From Paramoeba atlantica (taxonomy: Eukaryota; Protista; Discosea): a stretch of DNA of 29,831 nucleotides. Under the pieces are notes generated by a model, which searched no databases, was not told where the DNA came from, and was given only the letters and a program-made list of their open reading frames with translations. This document shows positions 2,414-23,958 of the stretch, piece after piece. The translations under genes were made by a program, and so were the position numbers. Numbering within the stretch: position 1 is the stretch's first letter; every line of letters starts with the position of its first letter. The stretch is from the NCBI GenBank assembly GCA_977017575.1, contig CDRNVI010000097.1, forward strand, positions 1 through 29,831, written 5' to 3'.

Positions 2414-2860
2414 CCCTTGAGACTTCCCCTTGAGTACCGCTGTGCGTGACTCTGCCTCGTGTTATCGTTCCAAATGCCCCTTGGTGCGACATCCGTTGTG
2501 GGCGGATCATGTGCCGATGATATCGACCGTCGCATTAAGGGGAATATCTCTGCGCCAATGAGCGTATGATAAACAAGGTCCACCCGTGAGGGTGTTCATG
2601 CATATATTGGATTTGCACAAATTTTCCACGATTGCTGGCCTGATTATAGGTGTCGTTGAGATCTTTGTAGGAGGCATTGACCGGGATTGCGGATGACCGA
2701 GAAGATTGGTTGATATATTGTGTGATGTGTTAGGATGGGTGCAGATTTAAATTGCGGTGCCGCAGATTTTCAGACGTTAATGAACATGCCATCCTGCCTA
2801 TTTATCGGTGGAGTCCGATTTTGCGAGTCAGACTGCCTGGTGACAGAGTTATTGTAACGC

Positions 2861-2968
2861 AAATAAGCCCCAGTTCCCTTCTCGGGAACCGGGGCCTTCA
2901 AGCGAACTTAGAGTTCGAAGCTTCTCATACCAACAAGGTACAGAAACTGTATCTTTATCGTTAAAGTT
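2861..2968 (-). ncRNA. SL RNA: SL RNA gene, unit 2
   Basis: Same sequence as unit 1. Confidence 0.93.
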
Positions 2969-3067
2969 AACAAGGGCTTTACCAACCACCAGAGCTCATT
3001 GTTCGCTTTTGTCAAACTGATGAACTTGTTGTTCCACGAGTCTTAGCCCAAAATGCAACCTGGAAAC

Positions 3068-3078
3068 TTGTCTAGTGG
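3068..3078 (+). promoter_or_regulatory. Box A-like element divergent to SL gene (-100..-110), unit 2
   Basis: TTGTCTAGTGG, 1 mismatch to TRGYNNARYGG, inside an intact D-arm GTCT-AGTGGCA-GGGC. Confidence 0.6.
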
Positions 3079-3116
3079 CAGGGCGTGCTTTTCTGAGACT
3101 GACGAACCAAACTCCT

Positions 3117-3127
3117 GGTTCGATTCC
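3117..3127 (+). promoter_or_regulatory. Box B element (-149..-159 from SL start), unit 2
   Basis: GGTTCGATTCC, perfect tRNA box B. Confidence 0.7.
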
Positions 3128-3144
3128 CGCCCCGTCAATTTTCG

Positions 3145-3218
3145 CAACACGTGGCAAACTGTAGCCATGTGCTGAATGTCAAAACACTTGCACGGAGGTT
3201 CGATCCTCAGCCCGTGTG
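3145..3218 (+). pseudogene. Degenerate tRNA-like element 2, unit 2; present in all units
   Basis: TGGC/GCCA D-like stem, GAGG-TTCGAT-CCTC T-like arm, ACACG/CGTGT residual acceptor pairing, TTTT 4 nt downstream. Confidence 0.5.
3197..3206 (-). promoter_or_regulatory. Box B element (-152..-161 from 5S start), readable on both strands, unit 2
   Basis: Plus GGTTCGATCC, minus GGATCGAACC; both fit GWTCRANNC. Confidence 0.6.
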
Positions 3219-3247
3219 ACCTTTTCGAATGATAAAAACCCCGGAAG

Positions 3248-3258
3248 CCACTGCGCTA
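3248..3258 (-). promoter_or_regulatory. Box A element divergent to 5S gene (-100..-110), unit 2
   Basis: Minus strand TAGCGCAGTGG, perfect TRGCNNAGYGG. Confidence 0.65.
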
Positions 3259-3357
3259 GCGTAAACATGGTGAGTAGCGCCTCTGTGGGACACTCAGGAT
3301 GAGGCAGATTGTCGTGGAAAATATTTCTTTCATAGTGGGGATTTCACAAGTTACGCC

Positions 3358-3476
3358 GGGTACGACCATACTACGGTGAAAACACCACATCCCGTTCGCT
3401 TTGTGAAGTTAAGCACCGTCAGGCTCAGTTAGTACTGAGGTGAGCGATCGCTCGGGAACCCTGAGTGTTGTACTCT
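3358..3476 (+). rRNA. 5S rRNA: 5S rRNA gene, unit 2
   Basis: Same sequence as unit 1, T5 follows. Confidence 0.98.
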
Positions 3477-4084
3477 TTTTAAATGCAAGAGGAATCAGGT
3501 GGTGAGGTTTCGACGACCTTTCACGACGTTTCACGAGATTTTCTTCAATGTCGTCTTTGCCTCTCTCACCTCAAGGGCCTAGTTGCGTTTCGAATCGGCA
3601 TTGAGTCCTCGGGACGCTGTGATTTTTACGTACGGCTTTATAATACAGGGCGCATAGATGCCTTTGTATGTATGAATGTATGTAAAACAGGCGGTTACCC
3701 TTGTTCAATGATGTCGCCTCCCCTGAGAAAGCAGGGAAACTTGGAGGAAAGTGCCTGGTCGCTGAACGGTCGATACTCTGTGGAGTATCGATATGGCATA
3801 GGTGCCTTTACATCCCCATACTCCCCGTCAGGAAGTGCGGTGCCACGCTACTGGAGCAGGTGGTGGGATGGATGTAACGTCTGCAAACCAAGGAAGCGGA
3901 ATCCTCTGGCATCGAGAGGTGTCACCTTGCTGCTGCGGTGTATCGAACAGATAGCCTAACACACGTAAGCTCCCATCTAAGGAAGATTTCCGTTTACTGA
4001 TCGACCCACAACGCATTCGGAGGTTTTCCCCCGCAGACAAAGGTGTGGTCAGAAGCGTTCCGCGTATTCGAAGCCGGGGCACCC

Positions 4085-23839: not shown

Positions 23840-23958
23840 GGGTACGACCATACTACGGTGAAAACACCACATCCCGTTCGCTTTGTGAAGTTAAGCACCG
23901 TCAGGCTCAGTTAGTACTGAGGTGAGCGATCGCTCGGGAACCCTGAGTGTTGTACTCT
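23840..23958 (+). rRNA. 5S rRNA: 5S rRNA gene, unit 10
   Basis: Same sequence as unit 1. Confidence 0.98.

Follow-up and report, generated by a model that had tools for sequence, protein, structure and literature searches.

Putative tRNA-derived A/B boxes shared by divergent genes for SL RNA and 5S rRNA in a tandem array

Where an SL RNA gene and a 5S rRNA gene lie back to back in a tandem array, the question arises what drives the two genes from the short spacer between them, and whether one and the same polymerase reads both. We address this question for the window, by which we mean the whole stretch of DNA that was analysed (29,831 nucleotides of contig CDRNVI010000097.1). A sequence-only reading of this DNA had suggested that tRNA-type A and B boxes, placed at -100 from both gene starts and pointing away from them, may form a bidirectional Pol III cassette.

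The window is a tandem array with units of about 2.56 kb, each holding a 5S rRNA gene on the plus strand and, 390 nt away, an SL RNA gene on the minus strand. There are 12 tandem units in the window, and Rfam reports 12 matches to 5S (96.9-99.2 bits). Read from 2968 on the minus strand, the SL gene begins with AACTTTAACGATAAAGATACAGTTTCTGTACCTTGTTG, which is directly followed by the donor GTATGAG; it carries the kinetoplastid SL core CAGTTTCTGTAC, and its RNA is predicted to form three stem-loops (z = -6.7). Public-run data (four runs, all contigs) are informative on the use of the SL exon: in contigs from runs X1, X4 and X8 the exon at 2931-2968 is joined to many unrelated sequences, and it is therefore a used trans-splicing donor. 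Both starts are purines (A and G), as had been supposed. The coordinates of all features are collected in Table 1.

Table 1. Features of the SL-5S unit, given as positions in the window, and the U6, U2 and 7SL genes of the same genome
Feature	Position	Strand	Remarks
5S rRNA gene	3358-3476	+	Rfam RF00001, full length, 99.2 bits
5S T5 terminator	3476-3480	+	gene plus terminator = 3358..3480
SL RNA gene	2864..2968	-	exon 2931-2968 (38 nt); intron part down to ~2864
SL 3' flank	2854..2866	-	TTATTT 2866->2861 (interrupted T-run, T2AT3); TGCGTTAC 2861->2854
Minimal SL unit	2850..3145	-	296 bp: tRNA-like 1, 88-bp spacer, SL gene, TGCGTTAC
SL-side box A, TTGTCTAGTGG	3068-3078	+	start exactly 100 nt from SL start
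SL-side box B, GGTTCGATTCC	3117-3127	+	A-to-B start distance 49 nt
5S-side box A, TAGCGCAGTGG	3258-3248	-	perfect; start exactly 100 nt from 5S start
5S-side box B, GGATCGAACC	3206-3197	-	A-to-B start distance 52 nt
tRNA-like 1, divergent from SL	3057..3142	+	box A, box B, TTTT 3139-3142
tRNA-like 2, divergent from 5S	~3268-3181	-	box A, CAT anticodon-like loop, box B, TTTT 3184-3181
Conserved motif CGTGGCAAA	3150..3158	+	between the two terminators; colinear island with L051 248-256
U6			divergent real tRNA-Arg(TCG), box A -97
U2			divergent real tRNA-Cys, box A -101
7SL			divergent real tRNA-Lys, box A ~-103

Some further features of the array were observed. A 20-bp tandem repeat (GCACCCTTATCTGTCATACT) is present in every unit in about nine copies, together with a (TC)n tract of variable length and a long G+C-rich hairpin (1534-1716 and 2192-2275, recurring per unit; 2016-2134). 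A sub-family of units, with 5S at 23840, 26384 and 29029, differs by four changes each: A17>G in the SL exon (equivalent to 2952), G10>T in the 5S-side box A (3256), T>C at 3173 and C>T at 3280.

All four boxes lie where the sequence-only reading had placed them, and box A stands 100 nt from the SL start and the 5S start alike. The spacer was shuffled 20,000 times and searched for A/B pairs with up to 2 mismatches in box A and 1 in box B, the box A being 95-105 nt from the divergent neighbour. One such pair is present in 0.02% of the shuffled spacers (~2e-4), and pairs on both sides are present in none (0/20,000). The A/B layout is far beyond chance.

Both pairs are part of longer stretches with tRNA character. 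On the SL side, tRNA-like 1 resembles the D-arm and T-loop of tRNA-Gly(UCC) with a score of 50 (against 29.8 +/- 3.3 for shuffles), and it has GTCTAGTGGCAGG plus the T-loop in common with the tRNA-Gly(UCC) of this genome. The best match of tRNA-like 2, on the minus strand, is the initiator-type tRNA-Met of the genome, with a score of 42 (against 30.6 +/- 3.0 for shuffles, maximum 38). Its CAT loop is correctly placed, and the initiator tRNA-Met has the same unusual A54 box B (GGATCGAA): the 5S-side box B, which shows two mismatches to the consensus, is the A54 form found in the genome's own initiator tRNA-Met. This box B is near-palindromic, and in the window the reading on the other strand is almost as good or better. 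A tRNA-like 2 on the plus strand (a box A-like TGGCAAACTGT with GGTTCGATCCT) was nevertheless ranked below the minus strand: its tRNA similarity is 36 against 30.0 +/- 3.1 for shuffles, and it is also disfavoured by the relative described below (L051), in which the strict A/B pair on the 5S side is that of the minus strand.

Neither ARAGORN nor Rfam (at the gathering threshold and at E up to 10) reports a tRNA in the spacer, and the minimum-energy folds of the two tRNA-likes show no cloverleaf. Judged by their similarity to real tRNAs, tRNA-likes 1 and 2 are best described as decayed tRNA genes, not as random motifs. Since each relic ends in its own TTTT, the two are convergent, with their terminators about 40 bp apart. 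On contig C3 (L039 704-1091) a 388-bp SINE-like element is inserted inside the 5S-side box B (equivalent to 3197-3206 of the window); it has a tRNA-type head (GTGGCGGAGTGG ... GAGTTCAAACCCGC) and a 10-bp flanking duplication, GGTTCGATCC.

In the same genome, U6, U2 and 7SL each have a real tRNA gene in divergent orientation (Table 1), and this layout is the trypanosomatid arrangement. With both at -100, SL and 5S fall in the middle of the organism's own spacings, which range from -97 to about -103. The start of 7SL is fixed by a copy on contig C50 (L048), as this copy matches the other two (L047 and L049) only from GCTGGGG to the T-run; it has no upstream tRNA and is probably a retro-copy. The motif CGTGGCAAA is absent at the U6, U2 and 7SL loci.

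The 45.7-Mb assembly also includes AT-rich contigs, from about C137 upward (L001, L002, L044, L085, L086), as opposed to the lower-numbered contigs, on which the SL arrays and the tRNA-linked U6, U2 and 7SL genes lie. These AT-rich contigs carry canonical U6, U2 and U1 genes without a linked tRNA, together with many identical tRNA copies, and the assembly seems to contain a second eukaryote. An Rfam search of the genome for U4, U3 and U5 found none of them, and its U1 matches lie only on contigs of the second, AT-rich organism. U4 was sought via the complement of U6 as well, with matches no better than controls.

To what extent is the spacer conserved? A scan of metagenomes with the SL pattern yielded a single useful relative, a contig of 1.8 kb (L051). 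Samples in which this lineage occurs are marine or come from microbial mats. Its SL exon is identical to that of the window, its 5S differs by 1 nt, and its layout is the same, with the SL start at 63 (minus strand) and the 5S start at 450 (plus strand). The spacer is otherwise randomised (1-4 of 10 matches per 10-nt bin). At a strict threshold A/B pairs are found at -101/-152 on the SL side and at -96/-153 on the 5S side, with A-to-B distances of 51 and 57 nt; box A thus keeps its spacing within 1-4 nt of that in the window, across intervening sequence that is randomised. Colinear islands of window and relative comprise box A and box B of tRNA-like 1, its T-run, CGTGGCAAA, and a second T-run followed by box B of tRNA-like 2, and box B is the best conserved among them. 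Near-diagonal 11-mers with at least 9 matches occur 12 times, where 0.77 are expected and 300 shuffles give 9 at most.

The predicted folds of the tRNA-likes differ between the window and L051, and those of tRNA-like 2 are no more stable than shuffles. Given that there is no cloverleaf and no fold common to both species, the constraint acts on the boxes rather than on an RNA. In this comparison, the kept features are the boxes plus their position, which is the way promoter elements evolve. Conservation in relatives, which the sequence-only reading had proposed as a check, is seen in one diverged relative that keeps both A/B pairs near -100. The array copies themselves are homogenised, so that identity among them says nothing on constraint. 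In the four other SL repeats of kinetoplastid type that the metagenomes yielded, neither strand has an A/B pair.

Upstream of SL, no other position-conserved block is present from -1 to -95 in the comparison of the window with L051, and in these two species none of the positions from -30 to -70, the region in which trypanosomatid-type Pol II SL genes have position-fixed promoter elements, holds a position-conserved element. Such SL upstream elements are not sequence-conserved between genera. One candidate for an SL promoter element, the 12-mer GCTTTTGTCAAA at -37 to -48 (11/12 matching), was rejected, as it is shifted by 17 nt in L051 and probably a chance match.

Copies outside the arrays are informative on the activity of tRNA-like 1. 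A copy on contig C54 (L036 1001-1086; C54:755786-755871) is 95% identical and spans exactly 3057-3142, so that its ends are the TTTT and a point 11 nt ahead of box A. Pieces of a tRNA-headed SINE-like repeat adjoin it on both sides, and other copied small-RNA fragments surround it. With these ends the copy would look like a retro-copied Pol III transcript, and tRNA-like 1 would then be a Pol III unit of its own. Contigs C24 and C11 contain, beside full units, extra tandem mini-units of 296 bp that contain the SL gene and tRNA-like 1 only. The SL RNA, too, has full-length copies outside the arrays, with the intron still present (L041, L042 and L043, on C6, C87 and C83, respectively). These begin at +3 or +4, and their last part is GGGGCTTA plus oligo(A); by their look they are retro-copies that would mark the ends of the mature SL RNA.

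The evidence is weaker on the 5S side than on the SL side. The 5S-side box A has 2 mismatches in L051, lies 4 nt off and is less conserved than the SL-side box A, and 3/12 units of the window carry G10>T in it; box B and the T-run of this side are conserved in place in L051. The 5S gene is Pol III-transcribed in any case, and the upstream boxes are candidate elements for it. Among trypanosomatids, the 5S genes of L. major always adjoin tRNA genes, and no tRNA is linked to the 5S arrays of T. brucei and T. cruzi (PMC2695483). No TFIIIA has been found in trypanosomatids, and Tau95 is undetected on the 5S of T. brucei (PMC10781861).

With respect to the polymerase that reads SL, the 3' ends deserve attention. 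U6 (T6), 7SL (T5), 5S (T5) and both tRNA-likes (T4) end in a T-run, and all are without TGCGTTAC. The SL transcribed region has no run of at least 4 T's, and the SL strand has its first T4 at +932, with none in the preceding 931 nt from the SL start. The octamer TGCGTTAC, found in the SL 3' flank, follows right after the last stem of U2 too (L045, L046 1651-1658); it sits 2-5 nt past the last stem in SL and U2, and an adjacent T-run is present in neither. Being common to SL and U2, which lack the adjacent T-run, it sets apart a separate 3'-end class and may be a candidate shared 3'-end signal. It occurs once per SL unit, on the SL strand only, and is conserved in L051 (1733, minus strand), where GGGGCTTATTTGCGTTAC of the 3' flank is kept as well. 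Three pattern scans for a third gene (box B, then TGCGTTAC) gave only an SL variant and one chance match. U2 has a T4 at +191, within the stretch that its two copies have in common. Long T-runs follow all four of the other metagenomic SL genes; the U-rich site that precedes their last stem (AATTTTTGG in L054) is replaced here by CTTGAAGG.

A SNAP50 homologue (PF12251, 37.8 bits) is encoded in 459-aa open frames on contigs C29 and C49 (L089, L090), which look like haplotype copies of each other. Its presence does not show its use at the SL gene, and the choice of polymerase is not readable from the sequence.

Overall, we consider it rather likely that the A/B boxes are functional upstream elements of the snRNA type for SL and 5S. 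The tRNA remnants, the spacing like that of U6, U2 and 7SL, the conservation in L051 and the apparent behaviour of tRNA-like 1 as a Pol III unit together make a shared cassette the best reading. This part of the sequence-only reading is upheld; its other part, the transcription of SL by Pol III, is unproven, there being no T4 for 931 nt. The 390-bp spacer would thus consist of two convergent decayed tRNA genes that have kept only their A/B boxes, their position and their T-run terminators, each relic having its box A about 100 nt upstream of the divergent gene, as in the extragenic layout of kinetoplastid U-snRNA and 7SL genes. Following the trypanosomatid model, TFIIIC would bind the boxes and load TFIIIB in the gap of about 90 bp, from where transcription would start both ways, one direction leading into the tRNA-like and the other into the divergent small-RNA gene. 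If so, SL and 5S expression would depend on the boxes. That the boxes arose by chance, or that they are neutral remains of pseudogenes, is very improbable in view of the shuffle statistics, the in-place conservation in L051 and the significant similarity of both relics to real tRNAs, even though the tRNA finders do not call the spacer and the homogenised array copies carry no information on constraint. Less improbable but still unlikely is the explanation that each tRNA-like is an independent Pol III unit or a TFIIIC site, and that the two form a boundary between a self-sufficient Pol II promoter of SL and an internally promoted 5S gene, the -100 position being incidental. Two active Pol III units between independent promoters could also explain the conservation if they acted as a boundary or kept nucleosomes away; tRNA-like 1 looks like a Pol III unit in its own right, and internal promoters are assumed for 5S genes (PMC7920299). 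Such a role does not sit well with a spacing that matches U6, U2 and 7SL and holds within 1-4 nt in L051, nor with the mini-units, which keep tRNA-like 1 together with the SL gene, and another conserved SL upstream element was not found in the two species.

Within the preferred reading, in which the boxes serve both genes, it might be argued that Pol III makes the SL RNA itself, driven by the upstream A/B boxes as in the case of trypanosomatid U-snRNAs, and that the trans-splicing donor is a Pol III product. All other kinetoplastid gene classes with this layout are transcribed by Pol III (PMC4950102, PMC10781861). The lack of T-runs (at least 4 T's) within the SL transcribed region, where the U-rich site has been replaced, and the absence of a position-conserved element at -30 to -70 point in the same direction, as does the TTATTT at the 3' end: this is a T2VT3 element, and among the non-canonical terminators of human Pol III this type is the better one (PMC3141230); the TTATTT is kept in L051. 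Nonetheless, the first T4 comes only at +932 whereas the other small-RNA genes and both tRNA-likes end in T4-T6, and the copies elsewhere end at GGGGCTTA, before the TTT and without a U-tail. In addition, SL has TGCGTTAC in common with U2, which is here without the T6 that directly follows U2 in L. major (PMC4950102); the SNAP50 homologue is retained, and the trypanosomatid SL RNA gene is a Pol II/SNAPc gene (PMC5829719, PMC1888695). Transcription of SL by Pol III is therefore a possibility that we hold to be doubtful, and equally doubtful is its fuller form, in which a tRNA-derived promoter shared back to back with 5S produces an SL RNA that is terminated at TTATTT. An alternative that we put forward just as tentatively is that the A/B module is polymerase-neutral and positions or opens the promoter: SL and U2 would be Pol II genes, or at least genes of a machinery without use for T-runs, with TGCGTTAC as the 3'-end signal, and U6, 7SL and 5S by Pol III. 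The two clear 3'-end classes within one genome, the strand-specific single occurrence of TGCGTTAC per SL unit and its conservation, and the presence of SNAP50 are in line with this, and for the trypanosomatid SL locus, which Pol II reads, Brf1 and low Tau95 signals have been reported (PMC7920299, PMC10781861). However, only two gene families have the octamer, with no third emerging from the three scans; an 8-mer common to two genes could be due to chance (estimated ~1 in 600), and the T4 of U2 at +191 lies in a conserved stretch.

The SL RNA gene supplies trypanosomatids with their sole well-defined Pol II promoter, a bottleneck that all mRNA production has to pass, and the U-snRNAs of these organisms all use the upstream tRNA A/B-box device with Pol III. 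An SL gene that has the A/B device in a related lineage, conserved across two species and contained in a compact unit of 296 bp, is a natural experiment. If the Pol III reading is true, the trans-splicing donor, from which every mRNA receives its cap and leader, can be made by Pol III; alternatively, TFIIIC-bound A/B boxes could serve genes without T-run ends. Either outcome bears on the action of the boxes at a distance (PMC4950102) and on the evolution of polymerase choice among small RNAs. For 5S, the layout would offer a TFIIIA-independent route to expression where TFIIIA is not found (PMC10781861). Our literature search found no paper on a tRNA-like A/B module at an SL gene or on a divergent relic at -100 from 5S, and nothing on this SL sequence.

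The known systems that come closest are the extragenic promoters of trypanosomatid U-snRNA and 7SL genes, which, according to Nakaar et al. 1994 (cited in PMC10781861) and, for L. major U2, to PMC4950102, consist of a divergent tRNA or tRNA-like sequence with A/B boxes. In these, box A is found 104-106 bp upstream of snRNA genes, and U2 is no longer expressed when it is mutated (PMC4950102), the distance from tRNA to U3 is 93-105 bp (PMC2784804), and the TFIIIC subunit Tau95 occupies such promoters (PMC10781861). The locus studied here agrees with them in the divergent tRNA-like whose box A stands about 100 nt upstream, box B following some 50 nt beyond it (49 and 52 nt, where kinetoplastid extragenic promoters lead one to expect 30-55 nt past box A), in a position that is more conserved than the sequence of the boxes, and in the T-run on the tRNA-like. 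It differs in that the dependent genes are SL and 5S, neither of which has been described with such a layout, in a spacing of -97 to -103 instead of -104 to -106, and in the absence of an adjacent T-run at SL and U2, 5S having its T5.

The trypanosomatid SL RNA gene ends in a T-tract terminator. Similar to that gene are the SL RNA architecture, the SL core sequence, the tandem arrays and the SNAP50 homologue in the genome, whereas the gene studied here has no T-tract after it and has a tRNA-like A/B module at -100. Transcription of the trypanosomatid gene is by Pol II, from an upstream promoter that uses SNAPc/TRF4 (PMC5829719, PMC1888695).

Linked SL-5S repeats are known from euglenozoans, nematodes and dinoflagellates (PMC10161547, PMC2784804, PMC7859406), and as in those, SL and 5S share one tandem unit here. 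Their descriptions are without tRNA-like boxes, however, and the Euglena genes have the same orientation, whereas here SL and 5S point away from each other and enclose two convergent tRNA relics. Finally, a tRNA-type promoter next to 5S, where TFIIIA is unknown or bypassed, is also seen in L. major and in Yarrowia, the latter with dicistronic tRNA-5S genes (PMC2566860). In contrast to both, the relic is here divergent at a fixed -100, neither co-transcribed with 5S nor merely clustered with it. In comparison with these systems, the class of mechanism is already known, and its putative use at SL and 5S would be new.
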